DNA of 62,599 nucleotides, counting the filler, from Basidiobolus meristosporus CBS 931.73 (taxonomy: Eukaryota > Fungi > Basidiobolomycota), in assembly GCA_002104905.1 (NCBI GenBank). It is 4 parts of 4 records of this genome, joined end to end, with 100 filler letters (N's around TTAATTAATTAA, not from the genome) between each part and the next. Parts side by side here need not be neighbours in the genome. Positions count along the whole stretch, not along the records: positions 36,927 to 50,829 come from MCFE01001191.1; 3 more parts are not named here. The stretch is one strand, 5' to 3'. How positions within the stretch are numbered: the first letter of the stretch is position 1; each line of letters starts with the position of its first letter. Positions 3,597-50,829 of the stretch are shown here, piece after piece. A model generated the notes under the pieces. The model was not told the DNA's origin and searched no databases. It saw nothing but the letters and a program-made list of their open reading frames with translations. The translations under genes and the position numbers were made by a program.

Positions 3597-6500
3597 CTAG
3601 GGTAGAGAAGGTTCTCCTGAATCTTTTTTCTTGTGATACCAATATCTTGATGGTTCAGTATTATCAGCAAGTCTTGCAGGCTTGAGTCTGTCCCTATGTA
3701 CTAAGTCTTCCTGGATATTGCCTTGTTTGTCTGCTAGTTGGTAAGTTGCAAATGGAGATTCTCTGATGATCTCAAATGGTCCTGTCCATTGTGGCTCAAA
3801 CTTCTTCTGGGTGTTGTTTCTTAGTAATACAAAGATCCCAACTGTCAATGCTTCTGGTCCTATAGTCTTGTCAAATTTCTGCTTCATCATTTCTGCACTT
3901 TGAGATACTTTAGTCTGTGCCTCTTGACATCTTTGTTCCAGTTGCTGGTGTCTACATGTCTGACTGAGTTCATCTTCTAAGGTGTCTGCAAGCTTTGATT
4001 GCGTGAGATCTCCTGGAATCCTTGGTTCACATCAATACACTAAGAGAAATGGCAATTGCTGGGTGGTTTTGTGTACTCTGACTCTGCATGCAAAGAGTGC
4101 TTGGTCTATTTACTCATCCCATCTACTAACAACTCCATTTGCATACTTGGTCAGCATTTTTCCAAATAATCCATTAAACTGTTCAGTGACTCCATTAGTT
4201 CTGGGGTCATATGCCAAGGTTTTCAAGTGTTTGATCTGCTGCATTTCCAGGTAAGCTTCCATTGTCTTTGCCATAAAGTCTACTCCTCTATGAGATGAAA
4301 TCTCTACAGGGCGTCCAAACTTTTAAAGATCTCATGATAAATGAAACTTGCAACTTCTTGTTAACTGGCTATAGGTATGGCTTTAGCAACTGGCCATTTG
4401 GTGGCATGGTTAATTGCTACTAGGAACTAACAATTGCATTTCCTGGTAGTTGGCAGTCTTCCAATAAAGTCAATTCCCCATATTTTGAATGGTCTTACAG
4501 GCCCCAAGGGAGAAAGTTCAGCAAATCACTGTGGTTGGCCTTGGTTGATTTGGCAATTTAGGCATGTTTTCACTTGCTTCTCTATGTCTTGTTTCATTCT
4601 GGGCTACCATGCTCTGGCTTTCACAAGGCTATAGGTTCCTTCAATTCCAAGATGTCCATATCCATTGTTTAGCTTATGTATTAAATCCAGGTGAGAAACA
4701 TAAAGGCAATAGGCAATAGAGCTTTCATCTACAATTTAGTGGAGTGTTTCATCCTGTACAGCAAATTGGCTGGCTTCATCCCGGAATATCTACTTGATAT
4801 CTTCATACGCCTCATTAGGAATGGCTTGGTACTCCAAGTACTTTGGTAATAGGCTAGGCCAATCTGATTCATGCACCAAGTTTAGTTGTGCAACTTGTTC
4901 TAAGCTTGATAAGGCATCAGCAACCATATTGTTTTTTCCAGGGCAGTAGATAACCTCAAAGTCAAATTGCTCAATGTACTTACTCCATCTTGTCATTCTT
5001 CTAGAGAGTATCTTCTGAGTATATATATACTTGAGGGAGGCATGCTCAGTCTTCACATTGCATTTGACTCCTTCAATGTGGCATCTACATGTCTTCAAGC
5101 AGTGTACTATAGCAAGCATCTCCTTCTTGTGCACTGAATATTTTTGTTCTGCTGGGTGCAGTTTCTGGTATTCAAAGGCAACAGGGTAGTCCTTTCCCTT
5201 GTGTTCTTGGCTCAAAACTCCACCAATGGCATAATCTGAAGCATCTGTACACAGTGTAAACTATTTTCTGAAGTCAGGTATTCTTAAGCATGGTAGTTTA
5301 GCAAGTTCATTCTTGAGCATCTTAATGGCTGTCTCACAAGCTATGTCCTACTTAAAGGTGTTGCCTTTCTTGCGGATATCAGTTAAAGGGGCTGCAATAC
5401 TTGCAGAGAGCTTGACAAATCTCCAATAATAGGAAACCATTTCATGGAATGATCTGAGCTCTGGTATGGTATGAGGCTGCTTCATATTTTTGATAACTTC
5501 AACCTTCTTAGGGTCTAAGGTCACTCCTGTGCTAGTGACCATGTGTCCCAGATATTCAACATGTTCCTTGAAGAATTCACACTTGGCTATCTTGCCATAT
5601 AGTTTGTTCTCTCTCAGCTTCTTCAAGACCTTTTAATGTGCACCACATGTTCCTCTTCTGTCTTGCTGTATATCAATATGACATCTAGGTATATTATCAC
5701 AAACTTGTCTAAGTACTCCTGAAAGACAGTCTGCATCAGTGTCATGAATGTTGCAGGGGCATTAGTGAGGACAAAACACATGAATAAGTACTTGTAATGT
5801 CCATATCTGGTCCTGAATGCTGTCTTAGGGATGTTTTCTGGCTTCACCCTAATCTGGTTGTATTCTGACATGAGGTCAATCTTGAATATAGTGGCTCCAT
5901 TGAGTTGATCCAAAAACTCATCAATCCAAGGTATGGGGTACTTATTCTTCACAGTAACCAAGTTGAGGGCTTTGTAGTCAATGTACATTCTAAGTGTTCC
6001 ATCCTTCATCTCCACAAAAAGAACTGGTGCTCCCCAAGGTGACTTTTTGGGTCCAGTATATCCTTGCTCCTGTAACTGATCTATTTGTCTCTTCATCTCT
6101 TCCATCTCCAATGGACTCACTCTGTAAGGTAGCTTACTTACTTGGGGGCTATCTGCTGTGTAAATGGAATGATTTACATCTCTGACTGGTGGTAGGCTTA
6201 CAAATTCTTCTTGAAATACATCTGAATATTTCTTCAAAAGAGTCTGGACCTTCTGAGGTACTGGAGAAGAGGAATCTTCCCGTAATACTGCCATGAGCAA
6301 CATCTGGGTGCCTTTTCTTAGTGCTCTACAGAACTGTGTCTTGCTAAATTCACTAGTTTCACAAATACTGAAATTGACCAAGTTAAAATCCAGTCTGGCA
6401 GGTGATAGCTCATGGGTCTTGTTGTCCTTCTGGATTTGAGTAGCATGGGTTCTCCAGTTGATTAATGGATTACAACAAAATAGCCAGGTTTTCCCAAGTA

Positions 6501-36926: not shown

Positions 36927-37034
36927 ACTCTAGCCGCACGAACGGGTGGAACTTGGTGGCGCAAGTCAAGGCCAAGGTCAAGTTCAAGGTCCGGTGGTGG
37001 TAAGAGGCAATTCCGAACCGACCCATACCCCACG

Positions 37035-37336
37035 ATCAACCTTGTGGTGCACGGAATTTCGGGAAGGCAAGGTTCGAAAGCGTTTAGCGTCGACGAAGCT
37101 AAGAGTACCAAGCGTTTTCGGGGGAGGGACGAACTTGTGCGCTTACCTTTTTTTTGAACTCCGGTGGAAGCTCATCGACTTCAACAGCTTCTTCTCCTTG
37201 TTGCTGAACCGGCTATCCTGCTCGGCGCTGGTTCCCTAAACGACGGGGTGGTGGTGGTGGTGGGGTTAGCGTTCGGGTTTGGCTGAGTGGGTCTTGGTGA
37301 AACGGTCGTACTTTGAAAAATCCTGCGTCCCCCCAT
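37035..37336 (-). CDS. SRRM1-like: SRRM1/SRm160-like PWI-domain splicing factor, 5' exons only
   Basis: Exons 37336-37312, 37235-37147 and 37040-37035 with GT-AG introns give MGDAGFFK|GTSAEQDSRFSNKEKKLLKSMSFPPEFKKK|VD, matching the SRRM1 N-terminus (MDAGFFRGTSAEQDNRFSNK). Needs two 1-nt homopolymer corrections; similarity stops after VD. Confidence 0.78.
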
Positions 37337-38018
37337 GGTACGTTGTGAAGCGGTTTGTGACTACGGTGGAAGTTGAGGCCGAGGCTAAAGCTACGCTTAC
37401 GCTTACGGTTACTGCTACGATGAGAGTAGGGTTGGGTTGTACGTGATAAGGGTGGATTCGAGCCAGATGATATCCAAGAAAATCGGCCAAATCCCTGCGA
37501 TCCAATCGTTACGTTGGATTAATCAGTATCCCGGGCTGGTTTTGGGTCCCATAACTCAGTATCCACCGAATCCCCTTTATAAACCTCCCTCCCGACACCA
37601 GGGGGTTCCCTTAAAAAGGGCCAGTGGCGAGTCAATGCCACGTAGCATGCATTGTGCACTACGCTGAATCGACATCAAGAGATTTTGCTGGCATAATTTT
37701 TTTAAATTGACGGCCTTCTGGCTTCGCTCTGAGCTAAGGCCGTCTTCACCACCAATCATCAGTAGGGCAGTGAGATGCAGTGAGGGATTAATTCGGTTGA
37801 ACTTGCGGGAACCTACCCTACCGTTCCAACCTCTCGGATCGGGGATTTCTCAGGTTGAGGTGATGTATGGGGATCTGATCTCGGGCATAAGGTGTCGTGG
37901 ATTGCCAGCGCACAGAGCTTCGGAGAGTTCTCATCGTTGCGACATGGTTCAATGGTATAAATGGCATGGTTGGCCCCTCTCATCCAAATAGTATTCTTCT
38001 TTCGGTCCAAACCCAACA

Positions 38019-39109
38019 TTGATGAGATCTTCGGCTGCTTGCACCATCCTCTACCTGTTAGTATCAGGCACCCAATGTCTGGCTGGTCCGGTCGATGTGA
38101 AAGCCCTGAAATCCCTGGGCCACACGAGGCTTCTGAGCCATCCACGCCGTTGGCTGCAAACCCAATCCCACACGGTCTCCACGGCTGGCCAACCGTCGAG
38201 CAGCAAAAGATCCCATCCAAAGAAGAGAGATGTTCGCGGCGCGCGTAGAGCACCGAAAGTCAGCTCGACCGGCAAGGTGAAGTTCACCAGGGTCAATCAC
38301 CACCTCCCCAGGAGGTCGAACCATCCCAACGCCCGTGGCTCCAATAGGTTGCCTAGAAGAAACCTTCATCCCCACCTGGATTCGAAGGAAACCGGCAGCG
38401 TACAACGGTTGGCGCGGAGACTGGTGAACAACAGACTGGTGGGTACCGATATCAAAGCATTGAAGCAGGGGAAAGCCCTCGACGCGAAAGTGAAAGCTCT
38501 CCAAGATGCCAACGAGAAGCCTGGTGTGGACGTTGCCGCACTTATCAAGAGGCAGTTGGGCCCCAAGTTGGTCGATGCCAAAGTGGTGGCTCTAACGAAT
38601 GGGAAAACCCTGGATGCCAAAGTCAAGGCCCTTCCGGATGACCAAGGTGAACCGGCGATTGACATCAACGCCCTTGTGAAGCGACAGTTGGTCGCCCCCA
38701 TATCGGAGGGTAGCATGGATGGCTTGAGCGAGGAGGCCTCCGAGGCTAGGCCCGAGCCAATCCAGGGCGCGCCTTCCTTCGTGAAGCGGGCCTAGGCGGT
38801 GACCTGAAGGACGGGAAGCTATTGAACGCAGATATCAAAGCCTTGAAGGACGCCACGGGGACGCACGCCGTCGACGTGGTCGCCATACTGAAGCGGGAAA
38901 TCCAGGAGTTGCTTAGCACCGGTGCTAATGCTGACGAGGGCCTGGATCCCAAGATCGCTGATGGGGAGAGGCACCCCGATGCCCTGGTGAAGCGACTCCT
39001 GGGTGGCAACCTGCTCAGCTCCAGTATCGTGCGCTTGGGGGTTGGGAAGAGTTTATCGCTTAAGGTCAAGGCACTCAATGACCAGGTAAAGATCGATGCA
39101 TCGCCTTAA
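38019..39109 (+). CDS. Secreted repeat protein with multiple KR/RR sites (candidate Kex2-processed peptide precursor), ~363 aa if one G is restored at 38788-38790
   Basis: Hydrophobic N-terminus (MMRSSAACTILYLLVSGTQCLA); repeats of D(A/I/V)(K)VKAL and (V/I)D(V/I)xA(L/I)(V/I/L)KR; the same repeats continue in the next frame (38822-39109). Confidence 0.75.
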
Positions 39110-39289
39110 AGGGCGACGCCAACCCGTTGCCAGGCGGTCAGGTCCAAGTATATGCTGTAGTGGTCACCGCCCCAGCAAAGATTCACCATATACACATGGA
39201 ACGGTTATTTAATAAATTATGCTGATTATGCGTGAGATGAAATCGTGTGACCGTGAACCGATCTGATTGCGATTTAGCCCTGGGTTTCC

Positions 39290-40046: not shown

Positions 40047-43000
40047 CTAACTACCAAGTGTGGAAGGTGAAGATGAAGATGCTGCTACAAGAAAGAGGCC
40101 TTTGGGATATTGTCATGGGAGAAGAATGCCCTCCTAAAAACGCGGGAGAGGAAGCCTTAAAGTACCAGAAGATTGAACAAAGTGCCTTTAACTGCATTTG
40201 CCTTAATGTCAAGGACAAATTGCTAATTCAATGCTCAAGAGCAAAAACAGCAAAGAATGCCTGGAAGGCATTAGAAGACACCTACCAGTCATGTTCAGCT
40301 GCCAAGAAAATGTATCTGAGACGAAAATTCTTTACTACAAAGATGCTGCCAGGAGAAGAAATGAAAAATCTAATTAACAGAATTACCCTGCTGATAGATG
40401 AGATGGAATCTGTGGGTGTACCAATTACTGATGAGGATGTGATAGTTACCATCCTGAATAGCCTGACAGACAAGTTTCAGGGCCTTGTATCAGCCCTAGA
40501 GTCCAGAACTGAAGATTTGACCTTAAATTACGTATATGGAAGGCTCCTGGATGAAGAATTAAGAAAATCAAGCGCCAATAAGAAGGAAGAAGAAAATGCT
40601 TTAATAAGCAATGATAACCAACAAAGGAGGTACCCAAGACCCTACAAAGGCAACAGTAACCTATTTTGCAACTACTGCAAAAGGAAAGGACACACATCAG
40701 ACTGGTGTCTCAAAAAGAAAGATAATCAGCAAAAGAAGCCTGAATATGGAAATGCGGCAACAACTGAAGATAGACTATTCATATCTGCACTAAATATGAC
40801 CACAAACAAGGATTCTCAGACGTGGTATATTGACTCTGGAGCTTCTCAACACTTTACACACCAAAAAGAACTTTTTACCAAATATCAAGAAATTCCAATT
40901 AAGAAGGTGTTCATGGGTGACAATAGAACACTTGATGCAGTGGGAGAAGGAACTATCCAAGTAAACCTAAGAAGCAGTGAAGAAAGCCATACACTGACCT
41001 TTAAAGAAGTACTCTATGTACCAGAAATAGCCAAGAACCTACTCTCTGTAAGCAAGGCCACATCAGAATGACTCAGTTTCAGTTTTGACAATTCTGGATG
41101 CAGGATCACTGATCAAAATGGTGCCCATATTGCTTCGGGCATCAGAGATCAGAATCTATACAAGTTGACTTATATTCCATCATATTTGGAAGCCAATATA
41201 AGTAACTTAAATGAAGAAACACCAATGATTTGGCACAGGAGATTTGGACACATCATTTTTGATTACTTGTGCAAAATGATCAAAGATCAGCTAATTTCTG
41301 GAGTGAAAATTGATCCCCCAGCTAATTTGGAGCACTGTGAAGCCTGCATATATGGGAAACAAGCCAGACAACCATTCAAGAGATCTGGGTTAATCAAAAC
41401 TAAGAAAAAATTAGATCTAATTCACTCAGATCTGTGTGGACCTATGCAAAAATTATCCATAGGCAGGACAAAGTATTTAATCACTTTTATTGATGATTAT
41501 ACAAGATACACATGGGTCTACTTCATGGAGAGAAAGGAAGAAGCTCTGTCTAAGTTCAGGGAGTTTAAAGCCATGGTGGAGAGAGAAACTGGTGAAAAAA
41601 TCAAGAAAATATGCTCTGACAATGGTGGAGAATATACCTCAAAACTCTTCATCCACTTCTGCAAAATTCATGGGATAAAGCAAGAGACTACTGTACCATA
41701 CTCCCCACAGCAAAATGGAGTAGCAGAACAAGCTAACAGATCAATAATTGATATGGCAAGATCTATGATCCATGATCAAAAATTATCCTATGATTTTTGG
41801 GCGGAATCAGTTGCCACTGCTGTATACCTTAAAAATAGGAGTTATAACAGAATACTTTGTGATTCTACTCCATCTGAAGCATGGTATGGATACAGACCAA
41901 GTGCAGAACATCTAAGAATATTTGGGTGCACAGCATATGCCAAAAAACTGGCCGGAAATCAGTCAAAATTTGAGCCAAATAGTGTAAAATGCATATTTTT
42001 GGGCTACTGCAATGCAAGTAAGGCATACAGACTCTACAATACCAAAGCAAAGAAGCTGATCAAGTCCAGGGATGCGTTGTTTGATGAAAATTCAAAATTT
42101 TCACAAAAAATGACATCAGATGATGACAAAAATTTGATCTCAAGTCCACCAACTGTCAGGATTGAATCAGAGCAAAACAATGAAAATTTTTTCACTCCAG
42201 AGGACTCTACAACCGTGGTTCAGCCAGTATCAGTGCCCAGGAATATCCCAGAAGTGATCATTCCAGTATCAAATGCCCAAAGATCCAATCGGACAAGAAA
42301 TAGCCCAAATTACTATATCAATGAGGGTACAAACTTAGCCTATGCCTATTCAGTCCATATTGATGAGCCCCAGACTGTAAAAGAGGCCCTAAATAGCCCT
42401 CAGATGAAGTTTTGGAGATCTGCAATGACTGAGGAATATCAGGCCCTGATGGAAAATCAAACCTGGGACTTAGTCAAATTACCAATCAACCAAAAACCAA
42501 TTGGATGCAGATGGGTCTTCAAGACAAAATACAAGGCTGATGGCACAATTGAAAGATACAAAGCAAGACTTGTAGCCAAAGGATACTCTCAAACAAAAGG
42601 ACTTGACTATACTGAGACCTTTGCACCGGTAGCCAAGTTTAATTCCATCAGATTAATATTGGCTATTGCAGCCAAATATAAGTTTTTTATTCATCAAATG
42701 GATGTAAAAACTGCATTTTTGAATGAAGAACTTGATGAGGAGGTGTATATGGACCAGCCTGATGGGTTTGTTGACCAAGATAACCCCCATTTGGTCTGCA
42801 AGCTTAAAAAGTCACTATATGGTCTCAAACAATCACCAAGAGCCAGGAATTGCAAGATAGATTTTTATTTGGAATCTTTGAGTTTCAAAAGGAGTAATGC
42901 TGACTATAGTATATACTATAAGCCAGATAGAGCAAGTCCAGTTCTATTAGCTCTATATGTGGAGGATCTTATTATAGCCACCAATAACCTAGAAACATTG

Positions 43001-44294
43001 GAAGAGACTAAATCCAGCCTATCTAAGGAGTTCAAGGTGTCCAATCTAGGAGAACTTAGTTACTACTTAGGGATTAAGTTCTTCATAGACAGAAGTACCC
43101 AGACTATTACCCTAAGCCAATCCAAGTATATTCAAGATGTACTAAAGAAGTACAAAATGGAAGACTGTAAACTGGCAGCTACCCAATGGAGACAAACCTT
43201 AACTTGGTCAAAACTCAATTAAATCAAGAGAGCTTGGTGCTATCTGAAAGCCCTGACTTTCCTTATCAATCTATGGTTGGCAGTCTGATGTATATCATGC
43301 TTGAAACACGTCCAGATATCTCATATTCAGTGGGAGTTGTCAGCTAACATAATCAGAATTATGGATCAGATCATATTGCAGCAGTTAAGCGGATTTTTAG
43401 ATACCTAAAAGGAACTGCTGATATCTGCTTAAGATACACTTATAAGGATTCAGAACAGGATCTTGTGGGATACTCTGATGCTGATTGGGGACAAAATTTG
43501 GAAGACAGAAGATCCACCACACAATACACCTTTCTTTACTGTAAAGGAGCCATTTCATGGAATTCAAGAAAGCAACCAACCATAGCACTTTCTACTACAG
43601 AGGCAGAGTATCTGGCAGCCTGTGAAGCTACAAAAGAAGCAATGTGGTTAAGAAAGCTCTTTGCAGATTTAGGCCTATGTCAAAAAATGCCTATTACTTT
43701 ATTTCAAGATAATCAATGATGTATACAATTAGGTAGAAATCCAACTTTTCATGCTAGAACCAAGCACATAGATATTAGACATCATTTCATACAAGAAGCT
43801 ATAGAGAATAACTTAGTTAGCTTAGCTTACTCTCCTACAGATGAAATGATTGCAGACATATTTACCAAACCGTTAGCTAGAGACAAGTTTGAATATCTTA
43901 GGTCAAAATTAGGACTAGTCAGTATGAACATTTAGCTGAGTAGGAGTGTTGTAAAAATTTGTAATTCCACCTAAATATTCACCTAACTTAGTCACTTAGA
44001 TCATCACCTTCAAATCCTAGAGAATACTGACCAAATTCCTTGTTGGGATTTACTTAGAATATTTTCACCAAAATACCAGGTACCCAGAACATGAAGATTC
44101 TCAAAGTTGTCCAAACAGCCCCAAACTTTGCACACATGCTCTTGGGACCTTCCTTAACCTATTCTACGTGTTTGTAATGCCAAGACCAGGTAAAAGTATA
44201 AATACCACTTTTACATTCAATAAATCATTAAGTGAAAACCACATAATCACTTGTCCTCCCAATCACTTCCAATATCTCCAAGACTCTTACAACA
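40047..44294 (+). mobile_element. Copia family A, most complete copy (gag-PR-IN-RT-RH, PPT, 3' LTR); 5' LTR missing
   Basis: ORFs 40058-41071, 41165-43222, 43465-43719; PPT GCTGAGTAGGAG; 3' LTR 43947-44294. Confidence 0.95.
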
Positions 44295-46163: not shown

Positions 46164-49100
46164 TGTTGTAAGAGTTTTGGAGATATTGGAAATGATTGGG
46201 AGAACAAGTAGAGTATGTGGTTTTCACTTAATGATTTATTGAATGTAAAGTAGTATTTATACTTTTACATGGTCTTGGCATTACAAGCACATAGAATAGG
46301 CTAAGAAAGGCCCCAAGAGCATGAGTGCAAAGTGTGGGGCTGTTTAGACAGCTTTGAGAATTTTCATGTTCTGGGTACCTGGTATTTTGGTGAAAACATT
46401 CCAAGTAAATCCAGCAAGGAATTTGGTCAGTATTCTCTAGGATTTGAGGGTAATGATCCAAGTAACTAAGTTAGGTGAATATTTAGGAGGAATTACAAAC
46501 TTTTACAACACTCCCACCCAGCTAAATGTTCATACTGACTAGTCCTAATTTTGACCCAAGATATTCAAACTTGTCTCTAGCTAATGGTTTGGTAAATATG
46601 TCTGCAATCACTTCAACTGTAGGACAGTATACTAAGCTAACTAAGTTATTCTCTATAGCTTCACGTATGAAATGATGTCTAATATCTATGTGCTTAGTTC
46701 TAGCATGAAAAGTTGGATATCTACCTAATTGTATACATCCTTCATTATCTTGAAATAAAGTAATAGGTGTTTTTTGACATAGGCCTAAATCTGCAAAAAG
46801 CTTTCTTAGCCACATTGCTTCTTTGTAGCTTCACAGGCTGCCATGTACTCTGCCTCTGTGGTAGAAAGTGCTACGGTTAGTTGCTTTCTTGAATTCCATG
46901 AAATTGCTCCTTTACAGTAAAGAAAGGTGTATCCTGTGGTGGATCTTCTGTCTTCTAAATTTTGACCCCAATCAGCAACAGAGTATCCCACAAGATCCTG
47001 TTCTGAATCCTTATAAGTGTATCTTAAGCAGATATCAGCAGTTCCTTTTAGGTATCTAAAAATATGCTAACTGCTGCAATATGATCAGATCCATAATTCT
47101 GATTATGTTAGCTGACAACTCCCACTGAATATGAGATATCTGGACGTGCTCCAAGCATGATATACATCAGACTGCCAACCATAGATTGATAAGGAAAGTC
47201 AGGGCTTTCAGATGGCACCAAGCTCTCTTGATTTGGTTGAGTTTTGACCAAGTTAAGGTTTGCCTCCATTGGGGTAGCTGCTGGTTTACATTTTTCTATT
47301 TGGTACTTCTTTAGTATATCTTGAATATACTTGGATTGGCCTAGGGTGATAGTCTGGGTACTTCTGTCTATGGAGAACTTAATCCCTAAGTAGTAACTAA
47401 GTTCTCCTAGATTGGACACCTTGAACTCCTTAGATAGGCTGGATTTAGTCTCTTCCAATGTTTCTAGGTTATTGGTGGCTATAATAAGATCCTCCACATA
47501 TAGAGCTAATAGAACTGGATTGGCTCTATATGGCTTATAGTATATATTATAGTCAGCATTACTCCTTTTGAAACTCAAAGATTCCAAATAAAAATCTATC
47601 TTGCAATTCCTGGCTCTTGGTGATTGTTTGAGACCATATAGTGACTTTTTAAGCTTGCAGACCAAATGGGGCTTATCTTGGTCAACAAACCCTTCAGGCT
47701 GGTCCATATACATCTCCTCATCAAGTTCTCCATTCAAAAATGCAGTTTTTACTTTTATTTGATGAATAAAAAACTAATATTTGGCTGCAATAGCCATTTT
47801 TAATCTGATGGAATTAAACTTGGCTACCGGTGCAAAGGTCTCAGTATAGTCAAGTCCTTTTGTTTGAGAGTATCCTTTGGCTACAAGTCTTGCTTTGTAT
47901 CTTTCAATTGTACTATCAGCCTTGTATTTTGTTTTGAAGACCCATCTGCATTCAATTGATTTTTGGTTGATTGGTAATTTGACCAAGTCCCAAGTTTGAT
48001 TTTCCATCAGGGCCTGATATTCCTCAGTCATTGCAGATCTCCAGAACTTTGTATGAGGGCTATTTAGGGCTTATTTTACAGTCTGGGGCTCATCAATATA
48101 GACTGAATAGGCATAGGCTAAGTTTGTACCCTCATTGATATGGTAATTTGGGCTATTTCTTGTCCAATTGGATCTCTAGGCATTTGATACTAGAATGATC
48201 ACTTCTGGGATATTCCTGGGCACTGATTCTGGCTGAACCATGGTTGTAGAGTCCTTTGGGGTGAAAAAATTTTCACTGTTTTGCGCTGATTCAATCCTGA
48301 CAATTGTTGGACATGGGATCAGATTTTGTCATCCTCTGATGCCATTTTTTGTGAAAATTTTGAATTTTCATCATACAGCACATCCCTGGATTTGATTGGC
48401 TTCTTTGATTTGGTATTGTAGAGTCTGTATGCTTTACTCTCATTGCAGTAGCCCAAAAATATGCATTTTACACTTGTTGGCTCAAATTTTGATTGATTTA
48501 CTGGCAGTTTCTTGGCATATGCTGTATACCCAAATATTGTTAAATGTTCTGAGCTTGGTCTGTATCCATACCATGCTTCAAATGGAGTAGAATCTCAAAG
48601 TATTCTGTTATAACTCCTATTTTTAAGATATACAGCAGTGGTAACTGATTCCACCCAAAAATCATAGATTAGTTTTTGATCATGGATCATAGATCTTGCC
48701 ATATCAATTATTGATCTGTTAGCACATTCTGCTACTTCATTTTGCTGTGGGGAGTATGGTACAGTAGTCTCTTGCTTTATCCCATGAATTTTGCAGAAGT
48801 GCATGAAGAGTTTTGAGGTATATTCTCCACCGCTGTCAGAGCATATTTTCTTGATTTTTTCACCATTTTGTCTCTCCACCATGGCTTTGAGCTCCTTGAG
48901 CTTAGACAGAGCTTCTTTATTTCCCTCCATGAAGTAGACCCATGTGTATCTGATAAAATCATCTATAAAAGTGATTAAATACTTCATCCTGCCTAAGGGT
49001 AAATTTTGCATAGATCTGCACAGATCTGAGTGAATTAGATCCAATTTTTTCTTAGTATTGATCAACCCAGAGCTCTTGAACAGTTGTCTGGCTTGTTTCC

Positions 49101-50829
49101 CATATATGCAGGCTTCACAGTGCTCCAAATTAGCTGGGGGATCAATCTTTACTCCAGAAATTAGCTGATCTTTGATCATGTGGCACAAATAAACAAAATT
49201 GATGTGCCCAAATCTCCTGTGCCAAAGCATTGGTGTTTCTTCATTTAAGTTACTTTTGTTGGCTTCCAAACAGGATGGAATATAAGTCAACTTGTATAGG
49301 TTCTGATCACTGATACCCAGAGCAATATGGGCACCATTTTGATCAGTGATCTTGCATCCAGAATTGTCAAAGCTGAAAATGAGTCCTTCTGCAGTGGCCT
49401 TGCTTACAGATAGTAGGTTCTTGGCTATTTCTGGTACATAGAGTAATTCTTTAAAGGTCAGTGTATGACTTCCTTCACTGCTTCTTAGGTTTACTTGGAT
49501 AGTTCCTTCTTGCACTGCATCAAGTGTTCTATTGTCACCCATGAACACCTTCTTAATTGGAATTTCTTGATATTGGGTAAAAAGTTCTTTTTGGTGTGTA
49601 AAGTGTTGAGATGCTCCAGAGTCAATATACCATGTCTGAGAATCCTTGTTTGTGGTCATATATAGTGCCAATATGAATAGTCTATCTTCAGTCATTGCAG
49701 CATTTCCATATTCAGGCTTCTTTTGCTGATTATCTTTCTTTCTGAAGCACTGGTCCAATGTGTGTCCTTTCCATTTGTGGTAGTTACAAAACAGGTTGCT
49801 GTTGCCTTTGTAGGGTCTTGGGTACCTCCTTTGTTGGCTATCATTGCTAATTAAAGCATTTTCTTCTTGCTTCTTATTGGCACTATAGCCATTATGATAT
49901 ACTTACCCATATTTTATCTTATCAGTATTATACCATTCTTCTTTTGCCCATATTATCAGTATTATCCCCATATGATGTTTACCTTGATTAGTTATTAGCA
50001 TTAGTTATCCCAGATGTTATTCAGCTTTGTGATCAGTTTATGTATCCACATAAGGCAAAATACCCACATCAGTACCCATGACACATGACCCAGAATCTGT
50101 GTAACCATCCCTACCATTTTCAATACCATATATGGTATTTCTATGTTGCACAGGTTTCACACTACTGATTCCTGATTGGTTGGATGTGCTGTGCCTTTTA
50201 GAAACTTCCAGGACATTCATGGCATATTTTTTAGCTCATAGTGATGTCATCAAGAATTCCACTGATGCCAAGAATCTTCTAGAACCTTGTGATTAGTAAT
50301 CACTTGGCAATCAGGAAAAGTATATAAGGGAACGCAATCCCTCATCAATAAATCATCCCTTCTATGAGTAACACTTCTACCTTATTGATTAGCAGTTGAT
50401 CACTGCACCTGCCTTCAACAGTACATCTCAGACCTGCCATCAAGGAGCTTTTCAGGGTAGCACACAAGACACACAGAGGCCTTTGGAGACCACTTGGAGC
50501 ACCTAGGAAGCTAGAGAAGCAGGAGCTTTTACCATAGTGACATACTGACAAAGACACCAGCAGTTTAGACACAGAGGTTATTGCACCCATCAAACACTTC
50601 ACACACCTTGAGTTGTGTAACTTCTCCCAGGAGTACCTCTACACCACCACAGCGCTTGATTTTCTTAATTCTTCATCCAGGAGCCTTCCATATACATAAT
50701 TTAAGGTCAAATCTTCAGTTCTGGACTCTAGGGCTGATACAAGGCCTTAAACTTGTCTGTCAGGCTATTCAGGATGGTAACTATCACATCCTCATCAGTA
50801 GTTGGTATGCCCCAGATTCCATCTCATCT
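46164..50829 (-). mobile_element. Copia family A minus copy (3' LTR 46164-46510, RH, RT, IN, PR, part of gag); runs into gap
   Basis: ORFs 46522-46815, 47108-47737, 47774-48031, 48595-49758; PPT GCTGGGTGGGAG on minus. Confidence 0.93.
49884..50651 (+). mobile_element. Solo LTR-like insert (768 bp), 4-bp TSD GCGC
   Basis: TATAGCC (decayed TG)...CACCACA; flanks GCAC (49880-49883) and GCGC (50652-50655); the empty gag site (GCGCCAATA on plus) is seen at 35.42 and 40.57 kb; shares blocks with the reverse of 26812-27774. Confidence 0.85.

Follow-up and report, generated by a model that had tools for sequence, protein, structure and literature searches.

A candidate KEP-type peptide precursor with 44-residue repeat units in Basidiobolus meristosporus and its counterpart in Basidiobolus ranarum

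Kex2-processed repeat proteins (KEPs) are fungal precursor proteins defined by a signal peptide and at least three tandem repeats of at least 8 amino acids, which lie between KR, KK, RK or RR sites and none of which is longer than 100 amino acids (PMC7329392). They have been surveyed in 250 and in 1461 fungal genomes (PMC6339444, PMC7329392), and Basidiobolus meristosporus CBS 931.73 was the richest of the 1461 strains with 43 KEPs, many of its KEP genes being present in two to three copies (PMC7329392). No genus reported so far is richer in KEPs than Basidiobolus. Although the class is widespread in fungi, very few KEP peptides have been detected or assigned a role (PMC9769878). The motif recognized by Kex2 consists of Arg at P1, preferably Lys at P2, and Leu or another aliphatic residue at P4 (PMC8528282). 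One such precursor is Rep1 of Ustilago maydis, which is cut by Kex2 and yields peptides of 37 amino acids (PMC6339444).

The gene described here is located in the part MCFE01001191.1 of B. meristosporus CBS 931.73 and spans positions 38022-39109 on the plus strand of the window, which is the whole stretch of 62,599 nt that was analyzed and to which all coordinates refer. With a probability of about 0.72, it is a genuine Basidiobolus-type gene whose predicted product is a 362-residue pre-pro-protein fitting the KEP class. It would represent a new, apparently genus-restricted KEP type, which may already be among the 43 reported for this strain (PMC7329392). Since the class is known and well surveyed, the gene is of moderate interest. 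The features of the locus are given below; L001 denotes the B. ranarum contig JASJQH010001204.1.

~36927-37356, minus strand: 5′ end of a PWI-domain gene, cut by the edge of the piece (tblastx identity of 77-89% in short blocks to L001:3021-3237)
37613-37746, plus strand: complete U11 snRNA gene of 134 nt, 275 nt upstream of the precursor ATG
37956-37961, plus strand: TATAAA box, 66 nt 5′ of the ATG
38022-38084, plus strand: predicted signal peptide, residues 1-21, MRSSAACTILYLLVSGTQCLA followed by GPV (heuristic reading)
38085-38420, plus strand: basic His/Arg-rich pro-region, residues 22-133, eight dibasic sites, ending in RLARR
38421-38552, plus strand: unit 1, residues 134-177, canonical, 44 aa, end ALIKR, 57% identity to B. 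ranarum unit 1
38553-38684, plus strand: unit 2, residues 178-221, canonical, 44 aa, Gln start, end ALVKR
38685-38789, plus strand: unit 3, residues 222-256, degenerate and acidic, 35 aa, Gln start, end SFVKR, net charge -5
38788-38790, plus strand: G-run with the break of the reading frame
38792-38896, plus strand: unit 4, residues 257-292, 36 aa including the break codon, without the first sub-repeat, end AILKR
38897-38995, plus strand: unit 5, residues 293-325, degenerate and acidic, 33 aa, end ALVKR, net charge -6
38996-39109, plus strand: unit 6, residues 326-362, C-terminal, 37 aa, no KR end, with the TAA stop
39211-39216, plus strand: AATAAA, possible polyadenylation signal by motif only, 102 nt 3′ of the stop
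40058-43222, plus strand: Ty1/copia copy 1 with gag, integrase and RVT_2, in which ORFs of 337 and 685 aa remain
47108-49758, minus strand: Ty1/copia copy 2, fragmented

The ATG at 38022 opens a frame of 256 codons, whose last residues are APSFVKR at 38789 and which is followed by GCC and the stop codon TAG (38793-38795). After this break the repeat resumes in the third frame (GLGGDLK) and continues to the TAA at 39107-39109. The joined product of 362 residues, with an X at the break codon, comprises the predicted signal peptide (1-21), the pro-region (22-133) and six units, and the pieces on either side of the break were searched separately. None of the RNA runs searched contains the gene stretch, an absence that is not equivalent to silence.

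The predicted signal peptide has an Arg in its n-region and a hydrophobic core of 13 residues with a mean Kyte-Doolittle value of 1.7, and carries Cys at -3 and Ala at -1 in front of GPV. The sequence QCLAGPV around the putative cleavage site is identical in the B. meristosporus and B. ranarum precursors. A preliminary description of this DNA had named a signal peptide and a His/Arg-rich region with several dibasic sites: the heuristic features of the former are as predicted and the N-terminus is kept in the orthologue, and the latter corresponds to residues 22-133 with their eight sites. The frame of the pro-region is backed by the blocks GPVxVKxL, KSLGH and RRWLQT, which are kept in B. ranarum; outside of these blocks it is poorly conserved, at a similar length. 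An N-glycosylation sequon was found neither in the pro-region nor in the units of the window protein. In B. ranarum, too, a TATAAA is located 5′ of the ATG, at a distance of 87 nt (L001:4914).

All six units can be aligned to one 44-residue ancestor pattern. As written in the preliminary description, they are bounded by hydrophobic-KR ends: five of the six terminate with a hydrophobic residue, x, Lys and Arg (ALIKR, ALVKR, SFVKR, AILKR, and ALVKR), and the sixth closes the protein. The seven KAL/VAL cores that it mentioned were recovered as seven [KV]AL, the two units starting with Gln are units 2 and 3, and the only Cys residues, 7 and 19, lie within the predicted signal peptide, so that the statement of no Cys thereafter holds as well. 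When the mature sequence was shuffled 20,000 times, five ends of the type [ILVF][ILVF]KR were not obtained once (p<5e-5), and for the plain KR, which occurs seven times, the same shuffling gave p=0.01. These ends fit the Kex2 motif with Arg at P1, Lys at P2 and Leu or Ile, once Phe, at P4. Directly after the predicted cut sites follow QL, QL, GL, EI, and LL in the window protein and QV in B. ranarum. In units 3 and 5, deletions and heavy substitution have left xVKR in place; unit 3, whose alignment to the 44-residue unit shows a deletion, matches unit 1 in only 17% of its residues, with xVKR still present. Across the units Gly17 is invariant and Leu14 and Leu20 are nearly so, and the KR is not the single best-conserved position, so that a structural repeat could account for some of the conservation.

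The canonical peptide is built of three sub-repeats of ~15 residues of the type h-h-D-A-K-V-x-A-L (LLDAKVLAL, TLDAKVKAL, and AVDIDALVK in B. ranarum), with Gly-containing turns between them. The canonical unit is amphipathic, with a GRAVY of ~0 and a net charge of ~0 once the KR is removed, and locally its hydrophobic moments differ little between helix and strand geometry. Over all units of the window protein, the GRAVY ranges from -0.55 to +0.38 and the net charge from -6 to +3. Tyr and Trp are absent from every unit in both species. AlphaFold gave a pLDDT of 46 and no fold for the whole protein, and a pLDDT of 63 with three short helices for a single unit; this low confidence and the missing globular fold fit a precursor of short peptides.

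A word search in 5.8 billion proteins revealed a sole relative, KAK9761826.1 of B. ranarum, which is annotated as “hypothetical protein K7432_012981” and shares 40% identity with the window protein when the full length is compared, a value that rises to 60% within the repeats. In both species the precursor gene is preceded by a U11 snRNA gene and, further upstream, by the 5′ end of a PWI-domain gene. By sequence similarity and gene order, the gene of KAK9761826.1 is the positional orthologue of the precursor gene in the window. Its array consists of five full units and a partial sixth, hence of at least six near-identical units, each with 44-45 residues, a Gln start and an ALVKR end. The frame starts at L001:5001 and is uninterrupted up to position 6107, where the contig ends, and the number of units is a lower bound as the assembly breaks inside the array. 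The public model with 320 residues ends in an artefactual splice (DAKMTKENQL). Conservation of the KR sites in homologues had been set beforehand as a test of the preliminary description, and it passed, as both the KR sites and the 44-residue spacing are kept in the only homologue, i.e., in one comparison within a family of two sequences.

At both loci taken together, the neighbours are the PWI-domain gene, RPL29e, a PP1 phosphatase, a Ser/Thr-rich secreted protein, the U11 snRNA gene, and copia elements. The U11 snRNA was assigned by Rfam (RF00548) with 76.8 bits at a gathering score of 39 and an E-value of 2e-13. As Basidiobolus is named in surveys of minor-intron evolution (PMC10639083), a U11 gene is unsurprising here. 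It is 92.7% identical to L001:3460-3596, whereas the adjoining precursor genes differ in composition, with a GC content of 0.58 and a GC3 of 0.67 in 38022-38789 versus 0.43 and 0.39 in L001:5001-6106. The precursor gene had been described as hidden in a transposon cluster. This applies to the downstream side, where the two Ty1/copia elements are located, but not to the upstream side, which is conserved unique sequence common to B. ranarum. The retrotransposon stretch has a GC content of 36-39% versus 55-58% in the precursor gene.

Units 2-5 of B. ranarum share 90-98% identity as proteins and 85-88% as DNA, and a tandem repeat with a period of 132 bp and 84% matches was detected by TRF. Between these units, dN/dS is 0.01-0.09 at a dS of 0.5-1.0. 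Gene conversion would erase synonymous differences. The synonymous divergence together with the near-identical peptides therefore points to purifying selection on each copy and not to homogenization by conversion. As read from these codon comparisons, this means that long-standing purifying selection acts on each B. ranarum peptide copy. Between the species, pS is ~0.8 and thus saturated, and pN is 0.21. In B. meristosporus, pN is already 0.32 between units 1 and 2, two units have turned acidic and no tandem repeat is left at the DNA level in the window gene. This stronger decay of the units in comparison to B. ranarum could reflect a relaxed constraint.

Further relatives were not found in any of the collections searched. 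In Pfam, the window protein gave sub-threshold noise only (DUF7486 at E 0.11), as did the repeat-rich orthologue (LBP_BPI_CETP and others). When 1.84 billion representatives were searched exhaustively with a profile, nothing further related was found, the two extra matches being look-alikes. Of the 433 pattern matches in JGI metagenomes none was confirmed, a sequence search of the PDB gave nothing below E 0.6, the feature search in the ESM Atlas was uninformative with scores of at most 0.82, and the contigs of prokaryotic genomes contained no match to the precursor. The exact sequence of the window product is absent from a collection of 15 billion proteins, and a gene model for the window gene was not found in the protein libraries searched. 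The window gene illustrates how one homopolymer error can exclude a gene of this kind from public protein sets. The suggestion of an undescribed family is thus borne out to the extent that there is no Pfam family and only one relative, annotated as a hypothetical protein.

Both extra matches of the profile search were judged to be driven by repeats. The first one (P0002) is a protein with 15-residue repeats and no KR. It comprises 1017 residues and is encoded on a 10-kb contig of the ENA metagenome ERZ23498356, which with its tightly packed co-directional genes looks phage-like. It contains ~30 copies of TFDIDALVKALDQSK, strikingly like the third sub-repeat of the fungal unit, AVDIDALVKRQVNSK. 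The second one (P0003) is a STAND NTPase with TPR-like repeats.

The sub-repeats bear on the first alternative, in which the product is a secreted repeat protein that stays uncut, i.e., a fibrous or amphipathic-helix protein of ~15-residue sub-repeats, where the KR in every third one is part of the structural motif. The composition of each 44-residue unit of three similar sub-repeats would be expected in this case, Gly17, Leu14, and Leu20 are as conserved as the KR, and P0002 shows that a look-alike sequence can be repeated ~30 times in a phage-like context without any KR. Furthermore, AlphaFold places helices of ~35 residues across the KR sites and loops at DDQGKP, although at low confidence, and a pLDDT of 46 is too low to back any fold. 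However, on what is predicted to be a secretory protein, the KR ends have an optimal Kex2 context, the kind of site at which fungal kexins cut. They also survive in the two units which have lost most of their other residues, the sole unit lacking them is the last one, which needs no site, and all B. ranarum units begin with Gln. An uncut protein is therefore unlikely, and the processed precursor is preferred.

A second alternative concerns the break of the frame. A sequencing problem had been suspected at 38785-38795, and it is real: contigs of three public runs (X1, X2, and X3) carry one extra G in 38788-38790, by which the frame becomes continuous. The contig depths are 131 (X1), 129 (X2), and 18 (X3), where X1 and X2 derive from one 2016 sample and X3 from another sample of 2013, all within a single study. 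The read-derived contigs also differ from the window at 38234 (T>C), which is silent, and at 38667 (A>G), which converts DINALVKR into DIDALVKR in unit 2, the exact motif of B. ranarum. An intact form of the precursor gene exists, whether the break is a homopolymer assembly error or belongs to a minor allele or paralogue. An 86-nt GT..AG intron (38710-38795) was considered as a repair of the frame and rejected, as it has a weak donor (GTAGCA) and no branch-point motif and would also remove the unit that keeps its FVKR end, and as one letter in the reads explains the break.

If the frameshift is real in its haplotype, the window copy would be a dead or dying allele or paralogue, and the intact form in the reads another copy. 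This is consistent with the three differences in 1.3 kb between the window and the read-derived contigs (38234, 38667, and the G-run), with units much more degenerate than those of B. ranarum, with the two copia elements just downstream, and with KEP genes of B. meristosporus often occurring in two to three copies (PMC7329392). On the other hand, the break consists of one homopolymer letter, and apart from it no stop is present in 38022-39109. The longer G-run is found in all three runs, whose depths are 18-131. In addition, the X1 contigs hold 0.90 of the sampled 31-letter words of the stretch, and the loss of ~10% is approximately the cost of four differences. Such one-letter homopolymer differences are a classic consensus error of long reads, and a dead copy appears less likely still than an uncut protein.

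The weakest alternative is that the gene encodes the precursor of either a modified peptide, namely a RiPP of the ustiloxin/dikaritin type, or a pheromone, namely a signal of the alpha-factor type. This is very improbable. The design of signal peptide and KR repeats is common to such precursors (PMC7329392, PMC6339444), but Tyr, which is required for DUF3328-mediated cyclization (PMC7329392), is missing like Trp from every unit, and no DUF3328 (UstYa) gene was found in the window piece or in the 5 kb upstream of the B. ranarum gene (the neighbourhood seen covers ~5 kb to one side and ~11 kb to the other). In addition, no XA/XP dipeptides for STE13 follow the KR sites, and at 42 residues the peptides greatly exceed known pheromones in length.

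The processed precursor thus remains the preferred reading. Regarding the KEP definition, the window protein has a predicted signal peptide and six homologous units of 33-44 aa between RR133 and five KR, and at least six units of 44-45 aa are present in the orthologue. Wherever the sequence can address the KEP reading, it was found as predicted; secretion and cleavage are inferred. The signal peptide would route the precursor to the endoplasmic reticulum and be removed after Ala21. Next, a late-Golgi kexin would cut after RR133 and after the five L/I/F-x-K-R ends, and a Kex1-type carboxypeptidase would trim the basic residues. N-terminal Gln residues may cyclize to pyroglutamate. In B. meristosporus, the expected products are two canonical peptides of 42 residues, two shortened ones (34 and 37 aa) and two acidic ones (31 and 33 aa), with basic fragments of the pro-region as additional products. 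In B. ranarum, at least six near-identical peptides of 42 residues would be released.

Our tentative best guess for the role of these peptides is a surface-active or wall-associated, repellent-like one rather than that of a pheromone, a RiPP or a pore-forming toxin. In B. ranarum, a gene at L001:3702-4511 on the minus strand is transcribed divergently from the precursor gene. It encodes a Ser/Thr/Pro-rich protein of 269 residues with a signal peptide and a hydrophobic C-terminal tail, which resembles a GPI-anchored wall protein and has no Pfam family. A counterpart is absent between the U11 gene and the precursor gene in the window. This divergent neighbour in B. ranarum gives a weak hint toward a surface role.

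To our knowledge, the Basidiobolus lineage is without hydrophobins. A more specific and rather doubtful idea is that in Basidiobolus the 42-residue peptides take the place of repellents, where they would form a self-assembling, surface-active coat on the aerial, forcibly discharged spores and their Kex2-cut precursor would have arisen independently of Ustilago Rep1. Basidiobolus also lives as a commensal in the gut of amphibians and reptiles and can cause opportunistic infections in people and animals. In a lesser variant of the same idea, gut microbes or host tissue would be the target of the peptides.

As a single locus conserved between two diverged species, the precursor gene provides a clean test case for KEPs. 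The copies are near-identical and under strong peptide-level selection in B. ranarum and diversified in B. meristosporus, and the predicted termini of the peptides are simple to seek by mass spectrometry.

In comparison with the known systems, the precursor shares with the described KEPs the signal peptide followed by tandem units at KR/RR sites, the lack of any other domain and the restriction to one genus, as in most KEP types (PMC6339444, PMC7329392). It differs in its long units of 44 aa, each made up of three sub-repeats, and in having no Pfam family and no related protein outside Basidiobolus in the collections searched.

The alpha-factor precursor also has a signal peptide, a pro-region and tandem KR-ended copies with strong purifying selection on each copy. 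However, the Basidiobolus precursor contains no STE13 XA/XP spacers, its peptides of 31-42 aa are ~3-4 times longer, and the window pro-region is without an N-glycosylation sequon.

Ece1 of Candida albicans likewise consists of a signal peptide and non-identical peptides each ending with KR, and the mixture of KAL-rich and acidic units in the window protein resembles its heterogeneity, whereas the B. ranarum units are near-identical copies and not distinct peptides. In contrast to candidalysin, no window unit forms a long hydrophobic helix, the maximal GRAVY being 0.38 with charges spread throughout. The missing strongly hydrophobic amphipathic helix with a cationic end and the net charges from -6 to +3 do not fit a membrane-inserting, candidalysin-like cytolysin.

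Rep1 peptides act at the hyphal surface, where they form surface-active amyloid-like fibrils. Like Rep1, the window precursor encodes a series of similar peptides with lengths of a few tens of residues, and those of the window are amphipathic and without Cys. The parallel to Rep1 and Ece1 drawn in the preliminary description holds for the architecture only, and the roles suggested there, as surface-active, amyloid-like or effector peptides, are conjectural. The two taxa are distant, Ustilago belonging to the Basidiomycota and Basidiobolus to the Zoopagomycota, and the likeness to Rep1 concerns the architecture and possibly the mode of action, not membership of one family. Among the patterns compared, Rep1 nevertheless seems closest in the size of its peptides, their amphipathic character and the absence of Cys.
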